From Takakia lepidozioides (lineage: Eukaryota; Plantae; Bryophyta): a DNA stretch of 64,000 nt. Below the pieces are notes generated by a model that was given only the letters and a program-made list of their open reading frames with translations, ran no database searches and was not told where the DNA came from. Shown here in pieces: positions 1 to 51,129 of this stretch. The position numbers were made by a program, and so were the translations under genes. Where the stretch lies: positions 29,512,001-29,576,000 of the forward strand of contig CM060734.1 in NCBI GenBank assembly GCA_030704615.1, written 5' to 3'. The first letter of the stretch is position 1. Each line of letters begins with the position of its first letter.

Positions 1-390
1 GGCATACTTATTTGACTTGGTTTGACGATTTACAGGCTGGTAATCTCCGCACATACGTCTCTCCGTCCAATTGCCATAGACATCCTTCTTGGCTAGCATC
101 ACTGTGGTTGAAGCATATTCTCCATCAGAGAACTCCACCAAACCAGCCTCCCAGAGATCTTGAGTCCTTATCTGAATCAAAGACCTCTCCATGTCACTGT
201 ATCTATAGGGTCTCCGAAAGATTGGCGTGTCAGTGGCCAACTCAATACAAATCTCTTGACCCTTCAGTGCTCCCAAGTCCTTCAAACTAAAGGCAAAGCA
301 ATTCCTGTAAGCCCTCAGGAACCGCCGTATACGTCGTCTCTCTTCTCCGGTGACAATGGGTCCAATGTCAGGCTCCCAATTGTCCTCCAT
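1..390 (-). CDS. Reverse transcriptase N-terminus (Ty3/gypsy type), partial, runs off the window
   Basis: Hand translation from 390: MEDNWEPDIG...CFAFSLKDLG...IELATDTPIFRRPYRYSDMERSLI...LWEAGLVEFSDGEYASTTVMLAKKDVYGNWTERRMCGDYQPVNRQTKSNKYA. Same frame as MTase motifs VI-X. Confidence 0.9.
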   Translation of the reverse strand, partial: MEDNWEPDIGPIVTGEERRRIRRFLRAYRNCFAFSLKDLGALKGQEICIELATDTPIFRRPYRYSDMERSLIQIRTQDLWEAGLVEFSDGEYASTTVMLAKKDVYGNWTERRMCGDYQPVNRQTKSNKYA

Positions 391-729
391 AACTGCAACC
401 TTAAGTCCAGTGGGCTTAGAGGTAGAGGACGCGTCCAGTGGTTGCTATGTTGCAACCTCTTGAGCAGTACTCCCTACCTGCTCAGTCAATGACAAGGCCT
501 TATTCTGCCCCATCATCTCATCCTCGAGGACTTCTTCAACCCGAGAAAAATCCCCAACCTCATCCATCACTGCCACCTTGGCTGCCAACTCCCTCTAAAC
601 CTCGAGCACCTCCCACGTGTGTCATAGATGTCTGCACCCCGTGGTCCTCACATGCTCGCCCCCACTCACTGCCTGTACCATCTCGGTAGGCAGAGAGACC
701 ATCGAGGGAAGTGTACTTCGTACTCTGCA

Positions 730-1700
730 TTGCTCAGCCATAGCCAAGCTGATAATCCAGGTCAAGCAATTGAGATCCATTGCTTGTCCCAACACCTGAT
801 GACGTGAAAGAGACGACACCGCCGTGGTACCAGTGGTAAAACCCATCGCCCGCTCACGCTCGTCAGCATTAGGCTCCATTAACTGCTACAACTAAGCATC
901 CCACAAGAGGCCAGGTCCACTATCCCGGAAAACATGCGATCCTGGGAAGCAGAGTAGTGTAGATAATGTTGTTCGTGGTTGATCCACCTTGTTGACCACT
1001 GCCAAAGGCGAACGGTCATCGTGTCTCACACGCTGAGACTGCCTCCCTGTGTCCAAAATGCTATCCACTGTGAGGTGTGCTGGCCGTTGCACCCCATCAA
1101 ATGCACGCTTGAGCAGTGCGGATGGCATCAAGATAGTCCACCATAGTCGTGGACGATGAGCCCGTGACCCCACTGCAGCTGTATCCAACAACACTGCTGA
1201 TCCAAGCCACGACCGGACTTGATGCACACTGGCCATCACCCTAGCCCGAGAATCGCCCATCAGTGGCACATTCTCCAAAATGTATGTCGGAGATACAGCT
1301 TGATGAAGCTGTAAATGGCGCAAAACCCGCACCATCTCCCAAAACAGACCCGACCTCGAAAAATCCATTGCCGTGCCCGGCTGATGAATGCCCTTGGCAA
1401 GGCCAACCTGCCACTACCAAGTGGATGGGGCCAACCCGCTCCAAATCTTGAGCCCCCAGCAAATAAATGTCTAGTGGTAATGTCTGCTGGTATCCACAAA
1501 CTGCAGACACCGGCAACAACTCAGGGTACTGCTGCACCAACTGAGCAACATGGCGTAGGAAGACGCGTCATGCAGTCTTATCCCTCTCCACATACAAGTA
1601 ACGCCAAACTCGTACACCTGCCTGTAGCACTGCAGCCAATCCGGTGCTGATCCCGCCAAACAAGTCCAGAAGTCAAATGTCTTCATCCGGATACTGCCAC
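730..1700 (-). pseudogene. C5 cytosine DNA methyltransferase domain (DNMT3/DRM-like catalytic motifs, canonical order) within pol
   Basis: Hand translation: motif I LLDLFGGISTG (1672-1640), II YLYVERD, IV LVVAGWPCQGHS (PC at 1402-1397), SGLFWEMVRVL, VI YILENV (1275-1267), VIII DTAAVGSRAHRPRLWWT, IX EPNADERERAMGF, X RHQVLGQAMD. Frameshifts near 1712 and 1365; stops at 1673, 1568, 892 and 886. Confidence 0.92.
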
Positions 1701-2027
1701 ACAATAGGTGGGGTCCAATGGAGACAACTGAGGTGGTCCTGGTGCAATCCCCGCACTCTCTTCATCTCCTGATGGTACAAAAGCCTCTACCCAGGCTTGT
1801 TGCACCCGTCGATCAGCCACCCGCTGCAAATCCTTGCTCGTGCCCCACAATGGAGTCTGAGCAACCATGGCAGGCAACTCCGCCATACCATACATGTCAT
1901 CCTGTTCTCCTAGAGGTGTGTCATCCTCTGAATGAGTGTTGCCCTCTAGTAACTCTCCAGGCCAAGTCACTGCAGCTGTGAAGGTTGTCAGTGTCGGCAT
2001 CTTGCCTCGTCGGGCAACCGCAACTCC

Positions 2028-2723
2028 TCATATGAACGTCACAGAGAGTTGCACACGCCGGCCCTCCCCTGACTGCCATCCAGGCCTATAGGAAGTTGAC
2101 TCCTCCCAAAAATCCAGGGTGAAGCCCATGGGGTACAACACTGCCCCACCAACCAGGACATCGTACGAGACCGCGTCTATCACAATGGCCTTGGCTCGCA
2201 TCACTGAGCCATCTGTAGGGTGATCCGGCCGTAGTCTGATAGCCAACTCACGCCGTATCAAGCCCCGAGCCTGCTCCAATCCTCCCAGATATGTCTGTAT
2301 GTGGAAAGGACAAGGCTCCATATCCGCCTCCTTGAGGCCCAAGCCTGCAATAGCAGCTTTGCCTAGCATCAATGGCTGAGCTCCCGAGTCCAACAAGACT
2401 CGCAGTGGCCGGTATCTCTTGCCTGCCGGTCCACTCAAATAGAAAATGTCATCCTGGTTGTCTAACATGACAACCCCAGGTGTCACCATGGCGCGCTCAA
2501 TGGCTGGCCTAGCTGGCAGCTCCATCAACCTAGCAGCTGCAGCTTGCCATGGCGCCGCCGTGGCAATCTTCACCCTCAAATTCGAGGATCCCTTCGGCAC
2601 TATACCTCCCACTATCTCCGCAGAAAATGAAGTAACCTCCCCACTCTCACAGAGTATAGCTGCCAGCCTGAACACCTCAGTTGGTCTTACCCCCGGTGTC
2701 GCAATCATGGTAGCCGAGAACAA
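2028..2723 (-). pseudogene. Retroviral-type aspartic protease region of the polyprotein
   Basis: RVLLDSGAQ catalytic motif and C-terminal YDVLVG. Same frame as the knuckle ORF (2730-3470) and the linker ORF (1683-2000), separated only by single TAG/TGA codons. Confidence 0.85.
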
Positions 2724-2729
2724 TGGAGC

Positions 2730-4162
2730 CTAGCACACAGATTTGGCCGCCCCCAGTAGCACACTAGCTGCCGTAGCCTTGGCAACACTAGATAGTGGTG
2801 CTGCCCGTGTGGCTCTCCCCAATGGCATAGTAACCTCCGCCTCCGTAACAATCGGGCGAGAACTAGGTGCCATGGATGGCGTCGACACTGTCTCCACCAA
2901 TGTGAATGACTGAGGAAGCCTAGCCTGACGGCTTGCCTCCCCACGCTGTGGATCCAACTCCACCTCTGCACCTCGTGGCTCAGGAACTTGTCCTGCTCCT
3001 CGGGTCATTGCCGCCGCCGACTCCACTTGCACTAGTGGTAGTGCTACCCTGCACATGAATCCCATGCCTCCCATATCTCCTCCCTCAAGAGCAACAGGTG
3101 GACCATCCGGCCTTGGAGCCGGTACCACCTGAGCTGTAGCCATGGCAGCGAGCCTATGCTCTAGCTGTTGAAGCCGGTAGGCCATGCCTTGGTCAACACC
3201 TTGACCTCCGCGTCCTTGGCCATGTTGAGCTTGCCCTTGGCCTGCACCTCCTCCTCTCTGGGCTGTTCCACCTCGCCCCCGGCCACCATTGTTCCCTTGG
3301 AACTGGCCTGGGCGTAACTCACGATGCAAACCATAACACTGGGCCTCTCCATGCCCATGCTTGCCACAATGCCCACACTGCAACTGTGCAGGCTGTGCAT
3401 GTGCCTCGCTTTTGCCCCCCTCTGGGCAATCCTTCTTGACATGGGGTCCTTCACATGTCCAACACACCACCTCCGCCCCTTGTTGGCCTGCAAATGAAGG
3501 AATAGACCTCTACATCTGAGGTCCTCTCTGTCCTTCCCTGAGCTTCACCTGAGCCCCCTTGTTGCCTTGAGCACGTTGAGGTAGTGGTTGGCTAGGAGCA
3601 CCACTACCCCGTGGTGTCTCCTTAGCAAATCCAACCATAACCACTCATTCCTCCACCATGTTGAGCTCTATCCAGTACCACCAGTCCCACTAGTCCCACT
3701 GCTGCTTGTTGAAGCTGCCGGTGCAGCGGCAGGTGTAGCCACTGCCCTCGTGGCTCTAGTGCCCCTAGTGATGGAGACATAGTCAGGTGACCAGTACATC
3801 CTCCACTCCTCGATCTCAACCTCATGCCCCCGCCTGAACTCATGGTAATCATCCATAGGCGGCCCCTCAAGGTGCTGAAACAGCCCCTTCCATGCCATGA
3901 AAGGCGTAAATAGTTGTGGATTGCGCATTTGCTGCAAATCACACCAACTATCAAATTCTTGGATAAAATCATCCAAGTCGATGGTGCCCACCGCCCCAGA
4001 GTACCTTCGTGGCCCCTTGGTAGCTCCATACATCTCCTCCATTGTGTCCCACAACAATGGCAAGGAAACAACTTGCACCGCCGGTGTGAGTCCTCCTGAT
4101 TCACAATCCGAATCAGAACCTTCCGTAGAAGACACACGAGGTGAAGGTGGCCTAAACCGCAC
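2730..4162 (-). pseudogene. gag (N-terminal part, probable internal deletion plus frameshift near 3660, two Zn knuckles, G/R/Q-rich linker)
   Basis: YSGAVGTIDLDDFIQEFDSWC gag-like N-terminus; knuckles CWTCEGPHVKKDC and CGHCGKHGHGEAQC; in-frame TAG stops. Confidence 0.75.
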
Positions 4163-4919
4163 ACCTCGTCTCGAGTATCGCTAGTGCTCGAACCGGCACT
4201 CTCCCCAGCAACTAGTAGCACCTCCGTGTTGACAAACTGTCACTCAACCGGTCATGAACATGTCCCTAACCCCCTCTCCACAAAGTAACCGGATAGAGAA
4301 CCTGTTGCGGCTTATGGTTTGGAATACTAGGTTCGTAACATAACCTACACCTGCACCTGTATCCACCGCAAGCACTCCTATGGTTGGCTGGTCATCACCT
4401 CCAACCTCACCACAGAAGAAACGATGATGGTCTGGCTGGTCATCACCCCAGCCTTACTATCGACAGCATGCTCTAGGACTGGCCGGTGATCAAATCCGGA
4501 CCAATCACCTATAAAAACAAGCGCCCACACAAAACTAGCATGGCGCACAGTCAAGCATGCAGGTATGGAGGGGATCCAAACACAAGAAATCAGAATGACA
4601 ACTCCCCCACACCAAAAATAACTCCACGGTGTTGCTCCTACAATGACAACCCAGCCCAAACCCGGACTGACTCTTGCCTCCACCTACGGAAAGGTCTTGG
4701 CCTAATGAGAGGGTGGAAAACTACGAGGAAGAGAAGCTAAAGCAATGCCTAACCCCAGCATGCCCTCATCCCAACACTCTTCCTCTCCTCTCTTCCCTCA
4801 CTTGCATGACCATGGGAATATCATGAAGATACTCCTCAAACTGCCCTCCACGAGCTTCGAGATTTGGCCTTCAAGACCACATGCTAGTCCTCAAGCAGTC
4901 CACCAATGCCTCCACAAGT

Positions 4920-5560
4920 CAGCACAGGTTGTCCACAGGTCAACACGGGCCACCACAGACCAGCACAGGCCCACACAGATCACAGGTCACAGCCGTCACA
5001 GCCCCACACAGGCCACAACCCCACAGCCCCACAGGCCACATGTCACAGCCTGTCACAGCCCGTCACAGCCCCAAAGGCCACAGGGCACAGCCAGTCACAG
5101 TCCATCACAACCCATCACAGCCCGTCACAACCCCAAAGGCCACAGGGCACAGCCTGTCACAGCCCTACACAAGTCACAGGGTCACAGCCCCACAGGCCAC
5201 AGCCTGTCACAGCCCGCCACAGCCTATCACAGTCCGTCACAGCTCCACAGGCCACAGGTTACAGCCTGTCACAGCCCCAAAGGCCACATGGCACAGCCCG
5301 TCACAGCTCGTCACAGCCTGTCACATCCTGTCACAGTCCGTCACAGCCCCACAGCCCACAGGTCACAGCCTGTCACAGCCCCAAAGGCCACATGACACTG
5401 GCTATGAACCCATCACAACCTGTCACAGTCCGTCACAGCCCCACAGCCCACAGGTCACACCCCATCACAGCCTGTCACAGTCCGTCACAGCCCCACAGGC
5501 CACAGGTCACAGGGTCACAGCCCCACAGGCCACAACCCGTCACAGCCCCATCCATGGCCG
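4920..5560. repeat. Minisatellite of CACAG-core units (gtcacagcc / cccacaggc variants) in the LTR/leader of the DNMT element
   Basis: Dozens of short CACAG-containing units; they generate the low-complexity ORFs at 4745-5777. Confidence 0.9.
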
Positions 5561-5959
5561 TTCATGGCAGTTTAGCCATTTCTCCAAAGGGTTTAGCCAC
5601 GCCAAGCTAGGGTTTGTGTCTCTTGGACTCGAGGCTTCTTTGCACCGAGCTATGGCGGCTGTGAGGAAATCAGCAAAGTATTCTTGCTCTTTATGGCTCC
5701 CACACACCACCAATAGTAGCTCTAATTCCAACGGAAGATGTTTGCAACCAAAATTAACTGCACAAGCTTCCTTTTAACTCACAAAACAACACCATTGATC
5801 CCTATGGTGACTAACCAAACATGGCTGACTTCCAGCCTTTGTAGGCACTCATTCACACGTTTTTCTTGACCATAGCACGCCCCTTCGTACATAATCCAGC
5901 CCCTGCACCTACTACTTCAAGAGTTGTGCTCCCTTCAAGCTTGAAGTTGAAACCCCAAC

Positions 5960-6420
5960 TCACATATGCCTTACAAGTGCTTTTCTTCCACCCCAAGTGG
6001 AAACCAGCCCTTGCCCTTCCATTCTAGCTCTTTAAAGCTTGAAAGCCTCAATGGGTTGAAGGCATGCTCCACACATGCCCCACTCTCACCATAAGAGAAT
6101 CAGTTCCTTTGCTTCCTTTCTTGCACCCACAAACCTAAAAATATAAGCTTCAGCGGGCTGAAAGCATGCTCCACACATGCCCTACAAGGAAACCAGCCCC
6201 TTCATTCTTTTCTTGCACTCCCAAACCTGAAAGTACAAGCCTTCAACAAGCTGAAAGCATGCTCCACACATGCATTGCCCTCACATAAGGGAAATCAGCC
6301 ATTCCCTCTTCCTTGCTTGCCCTCCAAGCTTGAAGATGGAAGCTTCAATGGGCTGCATGCATGCTCCACACATGCAACCCCTTCACAAGAGGTATCAGCC
6401 CCCTATCTTGGCTCCTTGGC
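5960..6420. repeat. Degenerate ~100-bp tandem repeats
   Basis: gcatgctccacacatgc recurs at 6062, 6164, 6257 and 6359. Confidence 0.75.
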
Positions 6421-17132: not shown

Positions 17133-20100
17133 AACTCCCCCTCCCAAAGACAGGTCATTGTCCTCAATGACAGGAAATGAGGGGTAACTCAATGTCAATT
17201 CATTTTCCTTCTCCCAAGTAGCTTCTGTCTCTGGGTAATGCAACCACTTAATCAAATGTTCTTTCCAAGAACGGTTGCACAGGTGCTTTACTCGCATTTC
17301 TAGAATCTTTTCGGGTTCAGCCATCAGCTAACCATCATTCATGGCTTGAGGCAACGTCGGCAAGATGTGTGATGAGTCCGACATATACCTTCGAAGAAGA
17401 CTGATATGGAAAGTTTTATGGATCTTCCATGTTGGAGGCAGGTCCAACTCATAGGCCACTGTGCCATGGCGTTCCAGGATTTTAAACGGACCACAAAATC
17501 TTGGTGACAACTTATAACACTTGCCTAGTCTTAGATTGCTTCTTTTAGGTGTAACTTTCAAAAACACCATATCACCAATGGCAAATTCACGAAAAGTCCT
17601 ACACTTATCAGCAAAGAACTTGGCCCGTTCTTGTGCAGCCTGCATACTACGCTTCACCAGATCTAGGACAGAGTGGATCTCTTTGATTCTGTCATTCACG
17701 CTTTGCACATTTGATGGTGGTGTGATAAGCGAAGCAGGAGCTAAGCAATCTCGTCCATATAAAGCTTCAAATGGGCTCATGCCAATGGCACTGTGGAAAT
17801 GCTTGTTATAAGCAAATTCCACCATATACAGATATTGTTCCCAAGAGGACTGTCTTTCACCAACGTACATTCTCAACATATCTTCAATTGTACGGTTGGT
17901 CCTTTCTGTTTGGGCATCTGTTTCTGGGTGAAAGGCCGTACTCAATTTCACCTTGGTTCCCAATTTCTTAAACAAGTCAATCCAAAAATGACTTGTGAAC
18001 TTTGAGTCCCTGTCACAAATAATCTCCCGAGGCAGACCATGGATCTTGAATATCTCTTTCATGTACAAGGATGCAACATCAGATGCCGTAGCACTCATCC
18101 TTGTAGGTATCAAGTGGGCTATCTTAGACAGCCTATCTACAACCACCATGATACTGTCATGGCCACTTCTGGTCCTGGGCAATGCCACAATGAAATCCAT
18201 ACTAATGGACTCCCAATTCCATCCAGGAACAGATAATGGTTGTAATAATCCAGGAGGTCTGACTCTCTCTGACTTCGAAACCTGACATGGGAAACATTTC
18301 TGCACATATTCTTTAATTTCTCTCTTCATACCCGGCCAAAAATAGTGCTTCCGTATTGACCAATAGGTTCTCTGAAAGCCCGGGTGTCCAGAGATTGGAA
18401 TATTGTGACTGTCATGAATAATGCGCAATCTCAAGTCTGGAATCAGGGGAACACAAAGCCGACCATTATAAAATAACACCCCATCTCTCAAGAGGTATGG
18501 CCGGTACTTCTCTTTCTCAATAGAAGTTCTCTGATCACAAGACAAACTCTTTAATGGCTCTTTGAAGAATTCATCGACCTCATACTGACCTTTAATGTCT
18601 TGAAATATAGTGCTACTGACGCATGAGACAACATTAACGTGTAATGGTCTCCTAGAAAGTGCATCAGCAATCACATTTTCTCTCCCTTTGACATACTTTA
18701 GGTCATAATGGAACTGCTGAAGCAGTTCTGACCACCTGATCTGCCTCTGACTCAAATGAGGTTGCGTGGTCAAATATTTTAAACTCTGATGGTCAGTCTC
18801 TATCACAAAATCAACTGGAAGCAGGTAATGCCTCCATATCTTCAGAGCATGAACTATTGCCAATAGTTCCTTTTCATGAGTGGGATAATTCTTTTCTGCT
18901 AGACTGATCTTTCGAGATTCATAGGCAATCACTTGCCCATCTTGCATCAGCACAGCTCCAATAGCAAGATCACTTGCATCAGTACACAGTACTATTGCTC
19001 CCTTCGTAGGATCGAGCAATTTCAGTACAGGAGCATGTGTTAAGGCATACTTCAACATCTCGAAACTGTTATCACAATCTCTTGTCCAAACATCCTTCAA
19101 GCTTACAGGACTCGAGTCCTTAAGCAGGTCAGTCAATGGGGTTGCAATCTGTGAAAAAGATTTAACAAACTTTCGTAGGAAGCTAGCAAACCCAATAAAG
19201 CTCCTGACCTCAGTCTTATCACTTGGTTTAGGCCATTCAACCACTGTCTAGACTTTCTTAGGATCAATTGAAATTCCATCTTTGGAAATACAAAATCCCA
19301 AGTAATCCATGTGGTCTACAAAGAACTCACACTTGCTTCTCTTAGCAAACAGGTGGTTCTCTCTTAGTATGTCTAAAACCAAGCGTAAATGCAGTTCATG
19401 TTCTTCCTCAGACTTCGAGTATATTAGTATATCATCCATGTAGACTAAAACCATCTTCCCCAAATATTTCTGGAACAGAGAGTTCATCAGATAAGTAAAT
19501 GTTGCTGGAGCATTTGTGAGCCCAAATGGCATTACCAAGAATTCATAATGATCAAAACGAGATCGAAATCCTGTCTTTGGTATATCAGAATTCTTGATCC
19601 GTATCTGATGATATCCAGACCGAAGATCAAGTTTTGAAAAAACTTGACTCCCATATAGATAGTCAAACAAATCGTCCACACGAGGTAAAGGGAACTTATT
19701 CTTGATGGTGACCTTATTCAACCATCTATAGTCCACACACAGTCTCAAAGTTCCGTCTTTCTTCTTCTTAAACATTACAGGGGCACCCCAAGGGGATTTA
19801 CTTGGACGTATATACCCCTTTTCCAACAAGTCATTCAACTGCCTTTCTAATTCTTCATTTTCTGCAATTGAATGCCTGTACGGTGCCCTTGCAACCGGTA
19901 CAGCATCTGACATCAACTCGATTGCATGATCAACCTCCCGTTAGGGGGCATCCCAGGGAGCTCATCAGGAAACATATCTTTATATTCATTCAGGACCAGG
20001 CTAAGTCTGGGATGTGACTTCCCTTCTCCCTGATTTGTTTCCAAGATCTCATGCAAGCTAACAGCAAAAAGCTGAGCATTTCCCTTCCGGATACATCTCT

Positions 20101-21740
20101 TCATTTGAATAGCTGACAAAACAGGTATATTGGGAAGAGCTCTAATACCTTTGATATTGAATCCCTTCCCGTTGGGCAAGGTACCACTAACCAGTCCGGA
20201 TTTGCAAGCCACCACAGCATCAACCGGATCCAGCCACCACATGCCAAGGATGCAGTCGTACCGAGCTCCCTCCCAGACCTCGAAGTCAGCCATAGTCCAT
20301 ACTCCTTGCATGTCCATTGGTACCTTTGGGATGTGTTTGTGCGTAGAATCCACGCCACCATCTGGTAACAAGATTTGACAGGGTTGCATGTCTTCTTGAA
20401 CTAGTCCCAATTTGTCAACAAAATCCTTTGACAACAGGTTGTGAGTGCTGCCAGTATCAATCAGCACTTGAGTGGGAATTCCAGCCACTCTCCCATGAAC
20501 CCGTATCACACTGGGGTCATGCTCTATTTGGTCTCCAATGATAGCTGCAGAAACCCGCACATTAGGACCTTTCCCATTTTCTTGTCCTGATTTCTCTCTA
20601 GTTTCAACAACCACATAAGGTTCTGTAGGTCCTTCAACTGTTAAGGCGGCTGTCTGTCGAGCCTGACGAGAATTTGGGTACTTCATACACTCAGCAGTTC
20701 TGTGTCCAGGTTCATGGCACAAGAAACACAAACCCTTACGCTTGTGTTCTTCCTGTTCTTTGAAACTGAGCCTTGGGGGAGCCCTCATTGGCGGTCTCCG
20801 TATAGTTTGATCCCCCGCCTTCTTAAACGGTTTAAATCTCTTCCAATTCCCTCTCTTCGCTGGTGACTGCCAAGGACCAGATGATCTAGGCTTGAACTCG
20901 GCCGTGCCACGGGCAAAGTTCGAAGAACGTTGTGCCCTTACTTCATTCTCAAAATTGCAGGCCAAACGATATGCTTCTGCCTCTGTACGAGGGTTGTGGG
21001 CTTTGACCTTAAATTTGAGAGAATCACTGAGGCCATCGACAAAAAAAATCAACTCTGTCCTCTTCACTCAACGAGGGGAAATAACTGGCATGGGTTTCAA
21101 ATCTCGTCTTAAACTCTCCCACGCTCATAGTCTCTTGTCTCAGTCTGAACAATTCAACTTTCATCTTGTGTGCATAGTCGCCAGGTAGGTAATGGGCTAA
21201 GAACAGTGTCTTAAACATAGCCCAACTACCCACATATGGTTTCTTGTGTTCACGGCGTTCCTGCTTCTGACGCGACCACCATAGCTTGGCGGCATCACGG
21301 AGCTATAGAGCAGCTGTCTGTATCTTGGCTTCCTCTGAATAATCGTCCTCAAAGAACTCTTCTAAGGTATCCAAGAAAGACAATATTTCTTCAGGCTTGA
21401 CAGATGGCTTACCATAGAATTCTGGCCCAATCTTCTGATCTCCCTGGTGACATCCTTGCTTCTTTTCATCTTGGCCTCATGGGAGTCAGCCTTAGATTCG
21501 TCCTCATTCAGTGGCTCACTCACAGGCAGCTCCCTAGATCGCTTGTCAGTTTGAGTTTGTGTAGGGGCCAACTTCTGTATCTCAGATCGAATCAAAGTAC
21601 CTAAGGCCTCCATTTACTGCTGGGAAAATAACTGACTTCCATGTTCGCGATCTGAAGCTCGGTGCAGACTGGCCGCATCTGAGCGCTCACGATCTCCAGC
21701 CATTTCACTATCTTGATCGTCGTCACCAGGTTGCATGCTC
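17127..21740 (-). pseudogene. gag-pol polyprotein of the chromovirus (stops and frameshifts)
   Basis: Knuckle CFLCHEPGHRTAEC; PR LIDTGSTH; RT YMDD (19248-19916); RNase H TDASD; integrase HHCC, CDRDSKF and GPF (17328-19244); chromodomain EPEKIL...HLIKW...EATWE (17127-17324). TAG stops at 21362, 19248 and 17328; frameshifts near 21070 and 19940. Confidence 0.95.
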
Positions 21741-36700: not shown

Positions 36701-39700
36701 GTAACGGGTTTGTTTGAGGCAGGTCGAAACCTCTGCTTTGCTGTGGTGGCCAAGCGTGTGTTGAAGACTCTGCAGGACAAGCTTTTTACTGGCATCGTCA
36801 TTCAAGATATCGCATATTTTGATGGGACAACATCTGGTGAGGTGAGCATATTACTTCAACGACCGACAGGAATTTCTGTTATTTTTAAGGCTTAGGGCAA
36901 ATAGTAAGTGAAGAATTTTGTTTCCCATTGATCATGAGATGGCTGCGTCTTTGTAGCAGTTTCCCTCTCCAGATCGCCTTCTGCCTGCCATGAAACCGGA
37001 AAGAAGTTGGTTGAAGCATTGTTCAGTGTTGATCAATTTTTTTGAAGGGTACATTCCTATGAAGTGGATCCCTTGAGAGGGACCAACATGGGGTAGAATT
37101 GAGTAGATGTATTGTTGTAGTGGTCCATAAATTGGCAAAGAGATGCTAGGGTATTAGAAGCTTCCATCTCATTCTTGCCTCCTAAGGCGCGTATCGTTGG
37201 TGGTCTGTGAAAACAGCTGACCTCAAGGCTTACCAATGATGTGTCTTCAATGGCTGAGCCAGTGAATTGGATGCTCTCAGCACTGTTGCGGAACTGTCTC
37301 GCTCTCATGGGTGGGTTTGTGATGTGCTTCATCATAAGCTGGAAGCTTAGCATGCTGGCCTTCACCACTATGGCCCCTATTATGCACATCACGGCTGTCT
37401 ACTCGCGCTGGTCAAGGGAGCTCAACCGCAAGCGTTATGCTTTGTTGGCAGAGGCCAATTCAGCTGCCTCTGAAGCTCTAGGTAACATTCGAACGGTGCG
37501 GGCTTTCTCCACAGAGGAAGTGGAGATTGATCGTTTCAAGTCAAAAACTCTTGCTGCTATGCAAAAGGGTGTGAGAGATGCGTTTGCATATGCGGGAGCT
37601 GTTGCTGTTAACGATTGGCTGGATTTGGGTGCATCGGTACTCATCCTCTGGTACAACCTCTTCCCACCCCAACCCCCCCTCATGGAAATGAAACCCTTCC
37701 TTCTGTGTTTCATGACCTCACTGATACGCAAGAAAGGGGCTATTTGAGGCGACTGGAAACTAGGGCTGTGAGTCGACTCAAGAGGAGAATGTGAAAAGAA
37801 GTTGCACTAGAGCAGGTAGCCCAGTGGTTGGGTGTTTGTGCCTTGCCCGTGCATAACCTAGGTGATCTAGGGTTCAAAGTGTCCACCTTCCAACGGAAGG
37901 CAGTAGTCCTTTGGGATGAAGAGACACTATAATTCATGCTTCCTCCGGGAGGAGTCCTCTTTCAAAAGAAGTTAACCAACCTTGGGCTTCTTAAGCCAAC
38001 TCTAATGGTTGTGGTAGTGCTGAAGGTATGGAGGAGTCTTGGTGATGAATAATCGGCTGTCAGCAGGCAAGCTCATCACATTTCAGCTATACTGGAATCA
38101 AATACAGAGTGCATACCAAAGTATCATGTCGGTGTTGATGTCACTCACACGTGCAGCAGGTGCAGCGCAGCGCGTGCTGTCTTTGGTGGACGCCCTCCCT
38201 GATATCGACCCGAATGCTGGCACCATGGTAGCTTCCCTAAGTCACTGCACTCTTTTCTCTTACCTAGCTTTTGAAGTTAGTAGAATCCTCACCCCAATTT
38301 TGGGGTGTGCAAATCTATGAGGTTGCAAGATTCCCATTTGCCATTGTCCAGAGGGGACTAGTGTATGCTTGTACATCTCTCTTTCCTGCCTCTGTAATGA
38401 TTCCAACAGTGGCAAACAGAATGGACGCTAAGCTTCCTTAGGTTGGTAAAAGTAATTCTTTTGGAAATCCAGTATGGTGCGGATGAAAAATGCTGGGTGC
38501 TCAACTCTCATTTCCTTGGGGGGTCTCAACCCTTCTCCTAGGTTTGCTTGCACGTAAAGTCTTCCATTACCCTGAGTCAGCTCAGCTGCGTATTGGGATT
38601 GGGTTCCACAGTTGTTGGTATGCAACATTGGTTCGAAGTGGGTTTCCAAAGAGATTTTCTGTCAATGTACTCGATCAAAAGGTCCTTCACTCTAATCTAA
38701 GCTCATTTTGCTCGATTGGCTGTCACAGGTTTCATCTCTGGAAGGAGATATAAAATTGGAGAATGTCCATTTCCATTATCAAATGCGGCCCCAGCATCCT
38801 GTAATCTCTGGGGTGCATTTAGAGGTCGGGAAAGGCCAAGTTTGCGCACTTGTCGGACGAAGTGGCGGTGGCAAATCCACCATTGTGCACTTGCTTATGC
38901 GGTTTTATGACCCAACGCAGGGGCGAATTCTACTTGATGGCTGGGACTTGCGAGACCTCAACCTGAAGTCTGTCCACAAGCACATGGGGTTGGTAGCACA
39001 GGACACGCAAATGTTTGCATGTTCAATTGAGGAGAACATCACCTATGGGTTGTCTCATTGCCGGTGGGAGGATTTGGAGGAAGCCGCCAGGTTGGATCTT
39101 TGTGCACTGTTGTTGAAGGTCTATGCAATCTTAGATTGAGATTCTTCGATTTGGGTTTTTGTTCTGCTAGTTGTTCTCGAATATCGAAGCTAACCTGCCT
39201 TGTAGACATCCTCCGTGATGTACACATGATACCCAGCCAGTTGTAAAAATAAAACTTTTGGAGAGATGGGTAACGTGAAATTCTACCGCTCGGACAAATA
39301 AGCAGAAAACTCAGTCACCCTGGTCCTAAATTTGTCTTTTTGTGCAGGTATGCAAATGCTCATGATTTTATCCTGAGATTTCCTGAAGGCTATGCCACAC
39401 GTGTTGGGGAGCGTGGGGTGCGCCTGTCTGGTGGTCAGCGCCAGGTAATCTCTGTTCCAACCTCTGTTGAAGCCATTATTGATGGTAGTTACCTGCAATC
39501 CCCCACCACATGCTGGAAGCTGCCTCTCTAGAAAGCTCAAGTGTTATGTAATAGCTTCCTCCTTGTTGCATCCAGATTGGTTGAGTGTGCAAGACTACAG
39601 TGTGCCAAGGCCCCCCAGCCCACATCAGTCTTCTCACCTACCCTGTTCGGGATCTACATTGACGCCTTGGAGAATTACATATCAAAAAACCATGGGGTTG

Positions 39701-42143
39701 GGGTCCCATTGGATGGGGGACCAACCCAATCAGATCTCCTCTATGCTGATGATGTTGCCCTTTTGGCACAATCCCCGGTCTTTCTGCAACGCCATCTCAA
39801 AATTTTGGAACAGTTCTGCAAAGACTATGGGATGCAGGTCAATCTTAGCAAGACCAAGATCATGGTCTTCAATGGCCAGGCTGATCGTAGATTCATCTTC
39901 AACCAGCAGGAAATTGAGATTGTGAAATCATACCGGTACCTAGGTCTGGTTATCCACTCCCCCAAGTTTCACTTTGCAGCCACTGCCTTGGACAGGTTGA
40001 CTAAAGGTAAGGCGGCCTCCGTCCGCCTTCAGCCCAAATGCAAGCAAATACATCTGCGGCATCCCCCGACCAAAAAGTGGCTGTTTGACACGGTCGTCAG
40101 CCCTGCTACCATCTATGGTTGGGAGTTCTGGGCACCTGGTGTCCCTGTCTCCTGGTGGGAAAAGAATTTGGAACCATTACAGTCATCTTTTCTCCAAGCA
40201 ATGCTTGGCGCCAGGAGCACAACTCCATCTCAGATCCTAGGTGCAGAGTTCGCATGTGTACCATTGCAATCCGAGGCCCTCTTCAGGCTTACAATCTTTC
40301 TCCATAGATTGCAGGCCCTTCCACCCAAAGGGCTAGTGGCAAGGGCCCTCACAACATCTATGAGGCTCAAAGCTGCAGGTTTCAGGAACTCCTGGTATGC
40401 TCGAGTGGACAGTTTATTTCAACGTAACGGACTTTCTACTGCTTTCCTATTACCAATGAACCCAGATGAGGTGGACATCACATCCAGACATGACCGCAAC
40501 AGACTCATTCGGAGAGAGCTTATGGAATTACATGTCAAGAGAACTTGGATGCTACCCAATCTCACGACAAAGCTCCACTTCTATCGAGAGACATTCTTGG
40601 TGCTCCGCGATGATAGAATCTTGAGACCAAATTACCTTTCAGCACCCTTATCTCCTTCCCTCTTGAGGGCATTGGGGCGGTTCAGGGTGGGTTCCCACAA
40701 CCTACGGATAGAGACTGGCAGATGGAAAAACCTGCAACGGGAGGACCGCCTATGTCCAGCTTGCATAGGGCGCAGCAAGGAAATTGAAACTGAAGAACAC
40801 TTCTTCTTCGACTGCCCTCTATACTACGAGATCCGTGGGAGATTTCACTGTTTATTCAGTGGAACCCAAACTCTCACTGATGTCTTTCACTATGAGGATC
40901 ACAAATGCGTGGCAGCCTACCTACACGAGGCCTTCACCCTTAGACAATCGCTAGAACATTAATTGTGGTTTCTGGATTTGTTCCTCTCTCATGTTTTCTT
41001 CCATTTTGTCCCATAAGCTCTACGAGCTTTCCGCGGACGTTATAAAGCACCATTTCATTTCATTTCATTTCTCTCTCCCTCTCTCTCTTTGGCCTCTCCA
41101 GATGCTTGTGTGAAGGGATTTCTAGAGGATATCTGGAAAACCCGGATTAATTCTATATATGAAGGTAAGTCTTACTACCAACGTCAGCCCCTGACAGAGG
41201 TAGGTTCTGTCCCTTTTGTTTCCACTCAAACTGGGCGCGGGGTCAATGGCCACAAGGCTACGGCAAACAACGTCTTATGAGTACAATATTTGGCCTCTCC
41301 ACTACTTTACTCTCTCTCTAAACCCTGGTGGGCACACAAAAGGCTCCGGGAGTGTTAGTTTCTGTAAGGGTATGGCAAGCCAACATTCACAGGAGTACAT
41401 TCTCTCTCCTCTCTCACAAGGCTACGGCAAACAATGTCTTATGAGTACACATTCTCTCTCTCTTCCCTCTCTCTCTCTCTCTAAATCTTTTTCATCTATT
41501 GCCCTTGCCAGCTTCATCTTTTGCTGTGGAGTCTGATGCCCTATGTTTGCATCTTGTCAGCGTATTGCGATTGCCCGAATGCTGCTGCGGCGGCCACAAG
41601 TGTTGCTGTTGGATGAGGCCACAAGCTCACTGGACACAGAGAGTGAGGCACTGGTGCAACAAGCACTGGATCGGTTGATTGGAGAGGGTGGCCGTACTAT
41701 AATCTTGGTGGCCCACCGGCTCTCTACTGTACGCAATGCTCACAACATTGCAGTACTGGATAAGGGTCTACTCGTGGAACAGGGCACTCATGAGCAGCTT
41801 TTAGAGAATAGTATGTTGATCTCTCTCCAACCAGGACCTCTTGCAGCTTGTTCTACCTTTTCCCTGTGTCTGTTTTCTTGCAAATCACATATAAAACTGC
41901 ATGAAGGAAAGCACCGTGTCCAATGTGCTTTTTAAATTGTTCGATTTCAATCTAGGCATTATTAACATTGGTACTAATGAGTGTCTGGGTTGCCTCGCAG
42001 AGAATGGCGTGTATGAAAGGCTTGTCCGGAGGCAATTGCACAAAGTGAGCAACCGCATTATACAAGACCCGGAAAACAGGGAGGAGGAAGATGCAGCTGA
42101 CATTATTAGCAGTCTTTTGGATGATGACTCATCCCGCGCTTAA
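33727..42143 (+). CDS. ABCB-subfamily half-size ABC transporter (TAP/TAPL-like), 11 exons, ~904 aa. Exons: 33727-33864, 34378-34794, 35114-35355, 35937-36144, 36620-36841, 37217-37650, 38026-38227, 38729-39090, 39348-39444, 41561-41810, 42001-42143
   Basis: All introns are GT-AG and phase-consistent; exons total 2715 nt. Motifs: [24 protein letters not shown], Walker [11 protein letters not shown]-loop VAQD, signature LSGGQRQ, Walker [13 protein letters not shown]-loop VAHRLST. The exon 3/4 junction and the start codon are least certain. Confidence 0.93.
37811..37960 (+). mobile_element. Possible degenerate tRNA-derived SINE in ABCB intron 6
   Basis: A-box-like TAGCCCAGTGG (37817) and B-box-like GGGTTCAAA (37870). 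Confidence 0.35.
39630..41070 (+). mobile_element. 5'-truncated LINE (RTE-X-like) in ABCB intron 9
   Basis: Open frame to 40962: [45 protein letters not shown] and the Zn finger [14 protein letters not shown]; (CATTT)4 tail at 41051-41070. The 5' end is approximate. Confidence 0.9.
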
Positions 42144-46380: not shown

Positions 46381-49300
46381 TGTTAGAATTGAGCAAGAAC
46401 ATGAACAAGAACTAAAGTCTTAGACTAAAGCTAAAACTAAAGCTCTCCTCCCAACCATAGAAGCCACCATCGTACTCTTACACTTAGACTAGTGGCTTCA
46501 CCCCCGAGCTTGTACAAGAACGTCTCTAGAAAGTCCTACTTGGTCACTTCCACTTCCACTATGGTGACCATCCACCTTCTAGCCATTCACCTTCCAAAGG
46601 TGAGTTAAACAAGATAGTCTCTTAGACTTCTAAACCTTTGGCCTTCAAGACTCTTAGTCTTCTAGATATGTTTAATTACTTCCAACACTCCCACTCAATT
46701 AAACCATATCATTGAGCTACTTCGTTTGTCTTTGGAGAAGAGACACCAAGTAAGGCTGAACACTTCATGTGTTTTGTTTGTGGTAGACTCTTCGTCAAAA
46801 CATCCACAACCATATCTCCTGTAGCACAATAGATCATCTTGATCTCTCCCTCGCATACAACTTCCCGTATGTAGTGATGTTGCACTTCAATGTGCTTCGT
46901 CCTTGAATGATACTTCGGATTCTGACTTAGTGCAATCGCACTTTGATTGTCACAATAGAGAGTCGTAGATAGTGATTGAAGATGATCCAAATCTCCAAGC
47001 AACTTCCGTAACCAAATAGCCTCATTTGCTGCTTGTGTAATGGACATGTACTCAGCTTCTGTTGATGACAACGCTGTTGCAACTTGTTGTTTGCTAGACC
47101 AAGATACAGCTCCACCTGCTAGGAGAAAACAATGGCCTGAAGTTGATTTTCTACTATCAACGACTCCTGCCCAGTCAGCATCAGCAAACCCCAACAAACT
47201 TGGATCTTCCACTCTCTTGTAGAGTAGACCAGAGGTTAATGTTCCTCTTAGATATCGAAATATCCTCTTCACTGCTTTCCAATGGGTTTGTCTGGGATTT
47301 GAAAGAAATTGTGAGACCACTCCCACTGAATGTGCAATGTCTGGCCTAGTACAAACTATGCAATACATCAAACTGCCGACTGCGCTTTGATAAGGAGTTT
47401 TCCTCATATCTTCTTGCTCTTCTCGAGTCTTAGGTGTCATATCTTTCGTAAGTTTTAAACCAACTTCGAGATGAATTGATGTTGGCTTACTCATCTCCAA
47501 CTTAAACCTTTGTAGAATTGTCTCAATGTATTGTCGTTGATGCATGAATACTGTATGGTTCACTCGATCTCTGCTGATTTGAATACCAAGACAGAACCGA
47601 ATCTCACCCATGTCAGTTATGACAAACTTAGCACTCAACAGTGCTTTGGTTTCTGGCAACAACCTTTGATGATCGTTGGTGACAATGATTGTGTCATCCA
47701 CATATAGAGCTATGACCACAAATTGTTCTCCCATTTTTTTCACATAGATGTTTGTGTCAGCAATGCTTCGCTCAAATCTTGCCTTTAAGAGGTAAGCATC
47801 GATCCTAACATACCAAGCTCGAGGACTTTGTTTGAGTCCATACAAACTCTTCTGCAGCTTACACACAATATCACTTCCTCCTTGTACAAACCCTTCAGGT
47901 TGTCTCATGTAGATCTCTTCTTGTAGTTCTCCATTCAGAAATGCGGTCTTAACATCCATTTGATGAACTTCGTGATTATGTTGAGCTGCAAGAGCTAACA
48001 ACACTCTGATAGAAGAAATCTTCACCACTAGTGAGAAGGTTTCATTGTAATCCACTCCTTGAATTTGTGCATAGCCTTTAGTTACAAGACGAGTTTTGTA
48101 CCGGTAAATAGATCCATCAGCTTTGTACTTCAACTTGAAGATCCACTTGCAACCAATGGCTCTTCGTCCTGCAGACAACCTAGTGAGTGTCCATGCTTTG
48201 TTTTGCATCAATGAATCCAACTCTGAGTTGATTGCTTCTTCCCATTGTAGTTTGTCTGGAGAGCGCATCGCTTCCTCATATGTAGCAGGCTCAACCACTT
48301 GTGATGCTTCTTCCATAGCTTCAATGACACTCATAGATGTAATCAGCCTACTAGGAGCTTTCTTTTCCCGCTGAGATCTCCTTAGAATTGGCACATCTTC
48401 AACTTCATCTCTAGAGTCTATATCAACAAGTGGTCCACCAACTTCGACTCATTGATCAACTCCATCAAGTTGAACACCTCCATCATTTGCTTCAGCCATC
48501 TCTTGTATTGGCTCCTCATAAAACTCCTCTTGGAAATGGTGTAATGGCTCTAAGCTCATTCCCATGTCATCTTCTCCCACTACCAAAGAGGGTATGAAGC
48601 TTTCATCAAACACTACGTCCCTACTGTGTTTGACAGCCTTAGTTGTCTTATTGAACAACTTATATCCCTTCATACCTTCTGTGTAGCCAATGAAGATGCA
48701 TCCTTCTGATTTGGAGTCAAGTTTCCTTCACTTCTGAGTAGGGATATGGACATATGCACGACATCCAAAAATCCTACAATGAGCCACACTAGGCTTCTGA
48801 CCACTCCATACCTCTTCTGGTGTTTTTCCCAACACTGATTTGGTAGGTATTCTGTTGTGAAGATATGCTGCAGTGCCAACAGCTTCTGCCCAAAAATGAT
48901 TTGAAAGATTCACTTCTTTCAACATACTTCTTGCAGATTTTTGTAGTGATCTATTCATCCGCTCAGCTACATCATTCTGCTCAGGTGTATATGGAACAGT
49001 AAACTGTCAAGCTATTCCATTCTCTTGACAAAACTGATTGAAAGCATTTGAGATGTACTCACCACCATTGTCAGATCTCAAAATCTTAAGAGGCTTTCCA
49101 GTTTGTTTTTCTGCAAGTACTTTGAACTCCTTGAATTTCTCTAACACTTGACTTTTCTGCCTTAGGAAATTCACCACAACCCTCCTTGACAAATCATCAA
49201 TGAATGTCACAAAGTACCTTGCTCCTCCAAATGATGTAGTTTGCATTGGCCCGCACACATCAGAATGTGCAATCTCCAATATACTTGTGGCTCTTCGTCC

Positions 49301-51129
49301 ACCATCCTTAGGAAATTGACCTCGATGTTGCTTCCCTTCCAAGCAACCTTTGCATAGACGCATATCGCTCATCTCCTTCAATGGTAGTCCTTCCACAAGA
49401 TGGCTTGAGAGTTGCATCTGTCTCAACTTCTTAATGCTTACATGACCTAACCTTCTATGCCACAACTCTGTTTCTGACATGACAGGTGTAGATCCCAACT
49501 GTGGTGAAAATGTGGTAAGAGCACTAGAGACATGATGTTGTAATCTATACAAGCAATTATCAAGAATAGCTCTTGCTACCACAGCTCCTGAGCTATCTGT
49601 GATAGTACAACTCTCATCTTGGAATACCACTCTGTATCCCTTTGCAACAATTTGTCTTACAGACAGCAGGTTCTTTGTTAAAGTAGGGACATGTAGGACA
49701 TTTTCCACCTCTATGGTGACTGAGCCTTCCTCACCAATGACATGCTTGCTATCATCTCCCAAAAGAACATATTGTGTAGGTGAAAGAGATCTATAGGATA
49801 AGAAATGCTCTCTTTCTGAACTCATATGTTGAGATGCTCTTGAATCAACATACCACACATGCTTCTGTCTAGTAGTGGCTCAGAGAGACACAACAAATAG
49901 AATAGCATTCCTCTGATGAGTAGCTATGTTCCCTTGACTCTCTCTGTTGCGCTCATCTGCAATGCGCTTTCTACAATCCTTGATCATGTGACCAAGTTTC
50001 TTGCAATAAAAGCACCTCACTTTGGCCTTTTTTATCTTTGAGCTAGATTGAGATTTTTAAAACCTCTGGGACTTCTGAGACATATGTGAATGGAGTCTTC
50101 TATTCAAGACTACTCCAGTCTTGCCTGTGAACAAAGCTCTGTCTACCTCTGTAGACGTACCTTGACCTTTTCTTCTTGTTTCCTCCTTGAGGAGAAGTCC
50201 TATGACAACATCAATAGTTAAGTTGGTTTGTCCTGCTAGAGACACCACAAAACCATCATAGGATTCAGGTAAGGTTGCCAATAACACCACTGCGGCATGT
50301 TCATCAGTCACATAGACTAGTTGATCTCGCAACACATAAAACAAATTCAAGTGTTGTTCAATTGAGTCTGACTCGGTCATCTTCAGACCATAGAACTTTT
50401 GCGTCGCATATACTTGCGATGTGACATCATTTGTCTCATATATGCTTGTTAGCTTGTTCCAAACATCCTTAGCATTCTTAGCACTTATAATGAGATGCAA
50501 CTGATTGTCTCTCAAGCTTGTGATGATGCTAGCTCTTGCTTTCTGATCTTTCATATCCCATATGGCTTGGCCAACAATAGTGTCAAGTCTTGGGACTGAT
50601 CCATCAACCACTCTCCATAGATCTTTGTCTAGAAGGAACATCTCCATCCTAAACTTCCAGGTTTGATAGTTAGCTCCATTGAATCGATCTTCCACTCTTA
50701 CATCTAATGCACTCGTCATAGACATAGAAGGAGGATTGCTAGAAGACGACACTCCAGCCATAATCAAGTTCTCTCAATCTCAACTACCAACTCTCACCTA
50801 GAGAAGAATGGCTCTGATACCATGTTAGAATTGAGCAAGAACATGAACAAGAACTAAAGTCTTAGACTAAAGCTAAAACTAAAGCTCTCATCCCAACCAT
50901 AGAAGCCACCATCATACTCTTACACTTAGACTAGTGGCTTCACCCCCGAGCTTGTACAAGAACGTCTCTAGAAAGTCCTACTTGATCACTTCCACTTCCA
51001 CTATGGTGACCATCCACCTTCTAGATAAACACCTTCCAAAGGTGAGTTAAACAAGATAGTCTCTTAGACTTCTAAACCTTTGGCCTTCAAGACTCTTAGT
51101 CTTCTAGATATGTTTAATTACTTCCAACA
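46381..51129 (-). mobile_element. Full-length Ty1/copia LTR retrotransposon (inactivated)
   Basis: 307-bp LTRs tgttag...ccaaca at 46381-46687 and 50823-51129; TSD CGACA (46376-46380 and 51130-51134); PBS TGGTATCAGAGC (50822-50811); PPT TGAGTGGGAG next to 46688. Confidence 0.97.
46709..50761 (-). pseudogene. copia gag-PR-INT-RT-RH polyprotein with stops and frameshifts
   Basis: gag FNGANYQTWKFRM; knuckle CFYCKKLGHMIKDC (~50015-49975); PR WYVDSRASQHM; LWHRRLGH; INT RSDNGGEY; RT QMDVKTAFLNG, LYGLKQ, YVDD; RH ADADWAG, RTKHIEV. Confidence 0.95.

Follow-up and report, generated by a model that had tools for sequence, protein, structure and literature searches.

Among retrotransposons that carry a C5 DNA methyltransferase (DNMT), KnitGypsy-Dnmt3 of Klebsormidium nitens has an intronless, unpermuted DNMT3-type domain within a gypsy polyprotein, with conserved catalytic residues, a Ka/Ks below 0.2 and repeats arranged A-coding-B-A-B (de Mendoza et al. 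2018, PMC5890265). Its copy number in K. nitens is said to be low, and the domain gave no de novo methylation when expressed in yeast, a result that the authors considered inconclusive (PMC5890265). The current wording for elements of this kind is 'streptophytes (Gypsy-DNMT3)'. SymbioDIRS-Dnmt3 of Symbiodinium is likewise a retrotransposon with a DNMT3-type C5 DNMT, and its domain methylates CG de novo in yeast (PMC5890265), but unlike the element described below it uses a tyrosine recombinase. The EpiLTRs of Cymbomonas and Euglena (bioRxiv 10.64898/2026.05.21.726589) are C5 DNMT-bearing retrotransposons that also combine a methylase with a chromatin reader; their DNMTs, however, are sister to DNMT4, lie at the 3' end of pol and are accompanied by a DAM adenine methylase and a chromodomain. 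Green-algal gypsy elements of the order RT-RNaseH-DNMT-integrase-PHD (Scenedesmus sp. PABB004 'pol', KAF8056149.1; Monoraphidium MNEG_11595; otherwise mostly metagenome proteins) share with the present element a related DNMT3-like domain (35–40% identity), RT, integrase and a C-terminal PHD finger, but their methyltransferase (MTase) sits between RNase H and integrase and not between protease and RT.

In the current study a 64,000 nt stretch of DNA from Takakia lepidozioides (the window) was analysed. Its minus strand, from nt 1 to at least about nt 5200, is interpreted with a probability of roughly 0.8 as the 5' part of a Ty3/gypsy copy that is dead and CpG-decayed and that belongs to a bryophyte family of the Gypsy-DNMT3 kind with a very high copy number (Table 1). 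An initial annotation had described a land-plant Ty3/gypsy element at nt 1–4162, and every motif that it listed was found on the minus strand at the place given. Its class assignment is supported by the domain order of relatives and by the RT, which shows 71% identity over 130 aa to Marchantia polymorpha ORF2 and groups with Marchantia RT (100% support); a land-plant host is consistent with a position inside a clade (100% support) in which every named member is a bryophyte. The limits of the element had to be redrawn, as the leader and its tandem array continue beyond nt 4162, and gag does not start there but at the Met codon at nt 4042 (MEEMYGATKG, nt 4042–4013), by homology to the start of M. 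polymorpha ORF1. The 5' end was not located within nt 1–6000 and must be further right, and self-comparison of the window revealed no second copy or LTR partner.

Table 1. Parts of the retrotransposon copy in the window (positions in nt).
Feature	Position	Strand	Remarks
Element 5' leader	4043..6000	-	variable tandem array 4933-5512; CpG o/e 0.34
Gag N-terminal region	3674..4042	-	66% identical over 123 aa to M. polymorpha ORF1 start
Two nucleocapsid Zn knuckles	3464-3426; 3377-3336	-	CX2CX3HX4C; CX2CX4HX4C; PF00098 zf-CCHC matched in relatives
Aspartic protease region	2031..2723	-	LLDSGAQ active-site motif at 2396-2376; weak PF13650, E 0.045; relatives carry PF13650
Conserved protease-MTase linker	1707..2027	-	WPGELLEGN ... 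PLWGTSKDLQ; matches no known domain
DNMT3-like C5 cytosine MTase domain	622..1672	-	four pieces, two frames
MTase motifs I-VI	1672-1640; 1408-1391; 1281-1267	-	I LLDLFGGISTG; IV GWPCQG; VI ILENV
MTase motifs VIII-X	1161-1138; 861-838; 792-775	-	VIII AHRPRLWW; IX ERERAMGF; X LGQAMD
ORF1/ORF2 boundary, candidate type I readthrough site	439..447	-	in-frame TAG 447-445, then CAA CCA
RT N-terminal part, ORF2 start	1..438	-	first 146 aa; continues past left end of window

This copy is dead. It is depleted in CpG and is interrupted by three frameshifts (near nt 3672, where the frame of the Zn knuckles departs from that of the Gag N-terminus, near nt 1710, and at about nt 1360–1400) and by ten premature stops (nt 3647, 3512, 2732, 2030, 1675, 1570, 894, 888, 624 and 597), those at 1570, 894, 888 and 624 being within the MTase part. 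The MTase, previously called complete, is therefore broken as an open frame, and while the motifs GWPCQG, ILENV and AHRPRLWW are present, as had been claimed for its catalytic residues, only 10 of the 13 MTase residues invariant in the family are kept, the others being replaced (A184T, N200I, P257S). Some of the damage is private to this copy, namely the indel or frameshift near nt 1360 (junction depth 563, compared with about 8 × 10^5 around it) and a short deletion at nt 806/807 in the MTase part. The copy was analysed as separate pieces throughout, on which Pfam matched neither gag nor zf-CCHC, and PF00145 only weakly (E 0.013), so that the identity of the MTase domain is secure only through relatives. 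In the absence of a Pfam gag match, the Gag label follows from position and from the CCHC knuckles downstream. The protease region shares about 51% identity with M. polymorpha ORF1.

The order Gag-protease-MTase-RT is found also in M. polymorpha, M. paleacea, Calypogeia fissa, Sphagnum, Closterium and many metagenome contigs, and the window copy is colinear with the intronless ORFs of these relatives, in agreement with an earlier remark that the MTase has no introns. In less decayed relatives, ORF1 comprises Gag, two Zn knuckles, an aspartic protease, the linker and a C-terminal MTase, and ORF2, in the same frame, carries RT, RNase H, a DDE integrase and a C-terminal PHD finger. The 3' half of the element lies outside the window, and its integrase, PHD finger and repeat layout are known from relatives. 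In M. polymorpha Mp_4g09160, an ORF1 of 1278 aa is followed by a single TAG and an ORF2 of 1045 aa with RVT_1, RNaseH, rve and PHD domains (the last PF00628, E 1.2e-10), and an element from ENA (L008) has an ORF1 of 1330 aa, TAG, and an ORF2 of 1044 aa. Calypogeia has a 780 aa ORF with PF00145 (E 2.7e-10), then RT-RNaseH, and the relatives L003, L004 and L008 have protease, RT, RNase H and DDE integrase in that order. Dozens of unannotated family members, such as Mp_4g09160, are contained in public protein sets. The proteins Mp_8g17980, labelled as a cytosine-5 methyltransferase by UniRef, and MARPO_0008s0049 are also element proteins; such elements inflate the number of 'DNMT' genes counted in bryophyte annotations.

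A young M. polymorpha copy (L004) does not have two matching LTRs but repeats in the arrangement A (298 nt) ... B (113 nt)-A-B, with TG..CA ends, a GGTT target duplication and the palindrome GACAGCTGTC at the B/A joint. The A-coding-B-A-B layout occurs also in L005, across a gap, and open reading frames, near-identical repeats (99–100%) and a target-site duplication are found together in an M. polymorpha copy. Repeat searches of the Calypogeia and M. paleacea loci gave no LTR pair, these copies being old or decayed. It is the A...B-A-B layout, shared by the M. polymorpha relative and KnitGypsy-Dnmt3, that places the family in the known Gypsy-DNMT3 kind. By its published description, a comparison outside which domain order, leaky stop and PHD finger lie, KnitGypsy-Dnmt3 also agrees in its Ty3/gypsy domain set, in its intronless, unpermuted DNMT3-type domain with conserved catalytic residues, and in strong constraint (dN/dS 0.19 here). 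It differs in that the hosts here are bryophytes, and in that the family is very abundant in the present genome, as against few copies in K. nitens. No K. nitens protein was present by name among the protein-search matches, the NCBI-sourced matches being from GCA_027488445.1 and GCA_040399485.1. The kind has been known since 2018, from a green alga; no description of a DNMT-bearing gypsy element from land plants was found in the literature, in a search that missed most subscription journals.

By sequence and by predicted fold, the MTase of the family is DNMT3-like. The best sequence matches in the PDB are DNMT3A, 3C and 3B (E 3.6e-9), and HaeIII and DRM score lower (DNMT3A 39.5 bits, HaeIII 22.4, DRM 21.8), although identity to DNMT3A is only about 21%. 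An AF2 model of the domain has a pLDDT of 92.7, and the best 50 matches listed by Foldseek against the PDB are all DNMT3A/B/C (E about 1e-19). The catalytic domain resembles that of host DNMT3 (human DNMT3A/B, moss PpDNMT3b) in sequence, in fold and in its motif order, I-IV-VI-VIII-IX-X, which is unpermuted, unlike that of DRM; the PC Cys, ENV Glu and motif VIII Arg are present. Across 45 diverse members the catalytic Cys is conserved in at least 90%, and the ENV Glu-Asn and H192 and R195 of motif VIII are invariant or nearly so. In contrast to host DNMT3, the domain is fused to Gag-PR, and Pfam finds only PF00145 in the 1278 aa ORF1, without PWWP or ADD reader domains, so that it is a DNMT3-like catalytic domain rather than a full DNMT3.

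The MTase is an integral, selected domain that has co-diverged with RT. Between two M. polymorpha copies its dN/dS is 0.186 (dS 0.335), indicating that purifying selection on it matches that on RT in strength (0.185 in the same pair; gag-PR 0.233). Trees of RT (with a single distant outgroup) and of the MTase (without host DNMT families), both without Klebsormidium, are congruent: both recover one major split (99% support), with the green-algal elements on its other side, and a bryophyte clade with 100% support. In T. lepidozioides, one run gave 63,605 contig pieces that match nt 1–6000 at a likeness of at least 85%. Repeat depth is very high up to about nt 5200 and 5- to 8-fold lower beyond, and over the MTase part it is similar to that over gag, protease and RT. 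Among the joints listed, a single one removes MTase sequence, and it is rare (depth about 400, compared with about 5 × 10^5).

The MTase had been regarded as an integral domain of pol rather than a captured host gene. Shared architecture, dN/dS, congruent trees and even depth show that it is integral, but in less decayed relatives it ends ORF1, and a conserved TAG parts it from RT. This stop occurs at the same alignment position in seven loci (the window, L002, L003, L004, L005, L008 and L009), as TAG in 7/7, followed by CAR in 7/7 and by YYA in 5/7. The conserved UAG-CAR(-YYA) looks like a programmed readthrough site, UAG-CARYYA being the type I leaky context of plant viruses (PMC5382211); it is not universal, since some algal relatives (P0099) have one uninterrupted ORF. 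As predicted from the sequence, the UAG would stop most ribosomes and yield a Gag-PR-MTase product, and a minority, judging by conservation alone, may read through it and add RT-RH-INT-PHD. Lying in the Gag-PR frame before the stop, the methylase would match the capsid protein in abundance, unlike the scarce RT; the protease would free it, and it would be packaged with Gag. Type I readthrough in tobamoviruses and the gag-pol stop of gammaretroviruses also use a UAG to separate an abundant upstream product from the polymerase, but there the upstream product is only Gag or a small replicase, whereas here it would include a protease and a DNA methyltransferase. The PHD finger of the integrase, closest to those of CHD4, PHF12, DPF, PHF21A, KDM5, ATXR5 and UHRF1, might tether integration to a particular histone-tail state; chromoviruses similarly have a histone-reader module at the integrase C-terminus, but theirs is a chromodomain.

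Two other accounts of this organisation were weighed. The two frames of the MTase pieces in the window could, taken alone, suggest a foreign insert, i.e. a one-off capture of a host DNMT3 fragment or a nested insertion in a single gypsy copy. This is scarcely credible, as the frameshift near nt 1360 is private to the copy, and is refuted by the colinear homology and identical order in bryophytes, Closterium and many metagenome contigs, by the even depth, by the congruent trees and by the dN/dS of 0.19. An assembly artefact was also considered and rejected. Less far-fetched, but still improbable, is that the TAG is a nonsense mutation passed down from a dead master lineage, with ORF2 silent or expressed by other means (reinitiation, subgenomic or spliced RNA). 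Its presence in every bryophyte-clade copy examined could stem from common ancestry, a single ORF is found in algal relatives such as P0099, and the third codon departs from YYA at two of the seven sites. Against this, TAG and the Gln codon are kept in seven loci that differ by 30–60% in flanking residues, including L008, a separate lineage with other flanking sequence; the context is the known leaky one of plant viruses (PMC5382211); and the family is hugely amplified. Furthermore, ORF2 is open for 1044–1045 codons in L004 and L008, and RT has a dN/dS of 0.185, and therefore ORF2 must be translated.

As to what the integral MTase does, our tentative suggestion is that its substrate is the newly made DNA of the element itself, methylated either ahead of integration, as in the pre-methylation of cDNA inside the particle that had been proposed, or immediately afterwards. 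Somewhat less probable is that it is conserved for a different role, acting on host chromatin or rival elements in trans, methylating RNA, or helping the Gag-PR protein to bind DNA or RNA or to oligomerise. The failure of the Klebsormidium domain to methylate DNA in yeast points this way, as does RNA methylation having been raised for another TE-borne DNMT (PMC5890265). The MTase would, moreover, be part of the abundant Gag-PR product, apart from RT and integrase, and in type B relatives the P of the PC dipeptide is often replaced by E or S. On the other hand, the activity of the DIRS-borne DNMT3 domains in yeast (PMC5890265), together with a fold closest to the DNA enzymes DNMT3A/B/C, argues for DNA as the substrate. 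The near-invariance of the catalytic Cys, ENV Glu-Asn, H192 and R195 over 45 members disfavours a purely structural role, which would not require such conservation.

DNA methylation is the main means by which plants silence transposons, and a transposon family whose own de novo methylase is maintained by selection therefore presents a paradox. Until now a selected methylase borne by a transposon has been documented only in algae, where the gypsy domain failed its one activity test. The most far-reaching version of our interpretation is unlikely as a whole: a large and partly young gypsy family of bryophytes, M. polymorpha included, would carry a two-part epigenetic kit, with a DNMT3-type methylase made in Gag-like amounts ahead of a leaky stop and a PHD reader on the integrase, and the methylase would be active, mark the element's own new DNA and, where the family is this abundant, make a measurable contribution to the host's de novo methylation. 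The position of the MTase before a leaky-type stop and the PHD finger of the integrase both narrow the functional hypotheses. Elements of the same kind occur widely among liverworts and mosses, reach very high abundance in this genome and include an open-frame copy in M. polymorpha; together, these findings bring the question to a land plant that is genetically tractable and for which methylomes exist.

All motifs that the initial annotation had named in the element at the left end of the window were recovered on the minus strand by three-frame translation of nt 1-4300, and they are listed below together with the other features of the region. Pieces of the window copy, when searched separately, gave only weak Pfam matches (PF00145, E 0.013; PF13650, E 0.045), and the domain identification therefore rests on relatives. 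The 5' leader, upstream of the Gag start, carries a degenerate, CACAGCC-rich tandem array (nt 4933-5512, units of about 10, 52, 104 and 216 nt) that is length-variable among contigs of the same organism, with joints skipping 63-486 nt. An ordinary gypsy element elsewhere in the window provides an internal contrast without a methyltransferase (MTase).

Features of the window, and of the open Marchantia polymorpha relative L004
Feature	Location	Strand	Basis or remarks
Gag-like start MEEMYGATKG	4042-4013	-	translation
Two zinc knuckles	3464-3426, 3377-3336	-	translation
Protease motif LLDSGAQ	2396-2376	-	translation
MTase motif I LLDLFGGISTG	1672-1640	-	translation
MTase motif IV GWPCQG	1408-1391	-	translation
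MTase motif VI ILENV	1281-1267	-	translation
MTase motif VIII AHRPRLWW	1161-1138	-	translation
MTase motif IX ERERAMGF	861-838	-	translation
MTase motif X LGQAMD	792-775	-	translation
Gypsy-type RT, initial 146 residues, cut by window edge	438-1	-	translation
Tandem repeat, 127 nt, three copies, 91% identity	11054-11426		
Second, ordinary gypsy: RT immediately after the protease ORF, then RNase H, integrase, Tf2-type SH3 domain	17328-21067	-	
473-aa ORF with partial RVT_1 match	39541-40962	+	probably a further retroelement remnant
Ty1/copia: gag, Pol_BBD, integrase, RVT_2	46709-50767	-	
hAT-type transposase remnants: hAT dimerisation domain, DUF4371, zf-C17orf113	52845-55270	-	
L004 element, both frames open	L004:5826-16657		M. 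polymorpha AP019869.1, chromosome 4, Mp_4g09160
PHD finger	L004:15823-15957 (ORF2 residues 996-1040)		Pfam; PHD also in relatives P0090, P0111, P0140 and L008

The largest MTase piece of the window matched 75 proteins, including sequences from Calypogeia fissa, Marchantia paleacea, M. polymorpha and Sphagnum. At the Calypogeia locus, a 780-aa ORF (PF00145, E 2.7e-10) is colinear with the knuckle, protease, linker and MTase parts of the window copy and is followed by RT and RNase H, while in M. paleacea and one ENA contig the MTase precedes RT, RNase H, integrase and a weak PHD match. With the open Calypogeia domain as query, more than 12 M. polymorpha gene models were found (Mp_4g09160, Mp_8g17980, Mp_6g11220 and several MARPO_ models), as were Calypogeia and Sphagnum proteins. 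An exhaustive HMMER search returned 2,461 cluster representatives. For 222 the E-value was below 1e-30, and many of the representatives are polyproteins of 1,500-3,400 residues. In the organism itself, a single small run yielded 63,605 contig pieces on window nt 1-6000 at 85% likeness or more; the summed contig depth, which is not a copy number, was about the same over the MTase as over the gag, protease and RT parts, and the sole MTase-removing joint among those listed was rare. A 'plant metagenome' run from 2022, belonging to another study, contained 1,057 contig pieces of the family on the same interval, of which 129 were at least 99% alike, so that sample contained either this plant or a near relative.

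Selection could be gauged only between two M. polymorpha copies, as dS between species is saturated; this pair gave a dN/dS of 0.186 for the MTase (dS 0.335), 0.185 for RT and 0.233 for gag-protease. The main split is identical in the RT and MTase trees (99% support in each), and in both the window falls in a clade of 100% support, all named members of which are bryophytes: Marchantia in the two trees, with Calypogeia and Sphagnum additionally in the MTase tree. It is on this clade that the probable assignment to a land-plant host rests. Relatives, depth, dN/dS and congruent trees all argue against a one-off insertion with sister copies lacking the domain, and indicate that the MTase belongs to the element family as a whole.

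The window copy itself is, judged from its sequence, dead. Aligned with the open ORFs of the M. polymorpha relative, it shows three shifts of frame (around 3672, 1710 and 1360-1400) and ten premature stops (3647, 3512, 2732, 2030, 1675, 1570, 894, 888, 624 and 597), and substitutions (A184T, N200I, P257S) affect three of the 13 MTase residues that do not vary over a set of 45 diverse family members. Observed CpG relative to expectation amounts to 0.50 for the coding part and 0.34 for the leader, compared with 0.74-0.78 in the open-frame relatives L004 and L008. When contigs from four public runs were placed on nt 1-6000 and the family majority compared with the window, the latter had A/T against a majority G/C at 186 places and the reverse at 73. 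Stops 2732 and 624 read CAG and TGG in other copies, and at the junction near 1360, which no more than this copy has as a private feature, contig depth is 563 vs about 8e5 around it. Such decay is typical of a methylated, inactive insertion. The MTase had been described as complete; its motifs can indeed still be read, but its coding frame is broken.

By sequence, the best solved relatives of the MTase are DNMT3A, 3C and 3B (E 3.6e-9), well above HaeIII, DRM and HhaI. The M. polymorpha domain was modelled with AlphaFold (pLDDT 92.7). When the model was compared with the PDB by Foldseek, the 50 best matches listed were all DNMT3A/B/C catalytic domains (E about 1e-19, target-based TM up to 0.85). 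The motifs follow the unpermuted order, in contrast to the permuted order of DRM, and a Pfam search of ORF1 found no PWWP or ADD domain. The MTase is a bare DNMT3-like catalytic domain.

In L004, ORF1 (1,278 codons) encodes Gag, the knuckles, protease, linker and MTase and ends in a single TAG, after which ORF2 (1,045 codons) continues in the same frame with RVT_1, RNase H, the zinc and core domains of integrase, and a PHD finger (E 1.2e-10). The open ENA element L008, of another lineage, has ORFs of 1,330 and 1,044 codons. The stop occupies one alignment position in seven loci (L004, a second M. polymorpha copy, Calypogeia, two metagenome elements, L008 and the window, at nt 447-445), all with TAG followed by CAA or CAG, and in five of the seven the third codon is YYA. 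Several independent gene models terminate exactly at this TAG. The boundary resembles UAG-CARYYA, the type I readthrough context found in plant viruses such as tobamoviruses (PMC5382211). Since the context is similar and ORF2 is open and under selection, we infer programmed readthrough, by which the MTase would be the C-terminal domain of an abundant Gag-protease product and lie outside the readthrough polymerase. The initial annotation correctly placed the C-terminal half of the MTase in the RT frame, as is the whole of ORF1 in open-frame relatives. Its view of an integral rather than captured domain holds for the family, but in the less decayed relatives the MTase ends ORF1 and would not belong to the polymerase part.

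Two domain orders occur among 146 long relatives. That of the window family, PR-MTase-RT-INT(-PHD), is shared by Closterium and single-ORF metagenome elements, whereas in the commoner order, RT-RNaseH-MTase-INT-PHD, of which Scenedesmus and Monoraphidium provide examples, the MTase lies between RNase H and integrase rather than between protease and RT. In both types the integrase terminates in a PHD finger and not a chromodomain. The nearest solved relatives of this finger are those of CHD4, PHF12, DPF2/3, PHF21A, KDM5, ATXR5 and UHRF1, most of which read the unmodified H3 tail.

The window ends before the 3' end of the element, and the repeat layout is known from the M. polymorpha relatives. 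L004 lacks a two-LTR layout; instead, a repeat A (298 nt) is followed, after the internal region, by a polypurine tract and then B (113 nt), A and B. The element ends in TG..CA, is flanked by a GGTT target duplication, and has a perfect palindrome, GACAGCTGTC, at the inner B/A joint. As its A copies are 99% and its B copies 100% identical, L004 is apparently young. A second M. polymorpha locus, L005, has the same A-B-A-B layout across an assembly gap. We know of no worked-out mechanism for a split-repeat layout with a DDE integrase.

DNMT-bearing retrotransposons have been described in Symbiodinium and the charophyte Klebsormidium nitens, and in the accessible portion of that survey the embryophytes are Physcomitrella, Selaginella and angiosperms, with liverworts and Sphagnum not among them (PMC5890265). 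Later literature mentions 'streptophytes (Gypsy-DNMT3)', or retrotransposon-embedded DNMT3 as earlier reported for streptophytes. No description of the family in land plants, Marchantia included, was found in the literature searched, the coverage of which is incomplete. Judged from published features, not from K. nitens sequence, the window family shares with KnitGypsy-Dnmt3 an intronless DNMT3-type domain, conserved residues, Ka/Ks <0.2 and A-B-A-B repeats, and it is of the Gypsy-DNMT3 kind already known from the alga. What is new is that the hosts are land plants, that the family is very abundant, that the MTase is placed in ORF1 ahead of a stop of the leaky type, and that a PHD finger is present.

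A working scheme can be built on the observed architecture, conservation, selection and abundance of the family. Gag-PR-MTase would be the main product, to which readthrough of the stop would add RT-RH-INT-PHD; the MTase, released by the protease and packaged with Gag, could then methylate the new DNA of the element, and integration may be guided by the PHD finger. That the MTase methylates the element's own DNA is given a probability of roughly 40%. Another role, whether action in trans, on RNA, or structural, is somewhat unlikely. In the single published test of such a domain from a gypsy element, no methylation was seen in yeast; the authors draw no conclusion from this because human DNMT3B failed there too (PMC5890265).

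Products of ORF1 are annotated publicly as ordinary proteins, for example Mp_8g17980 (P0233), MARPO_0008s0049 (P0239) and a Sphagnum troendelagicum protein (P0246), and some bear the UniRef label 'DNA (cytosine-5-)-methyltransferase'. The presence of such element ORFs in annotations would inflate bryophyte DNMT gene counts.
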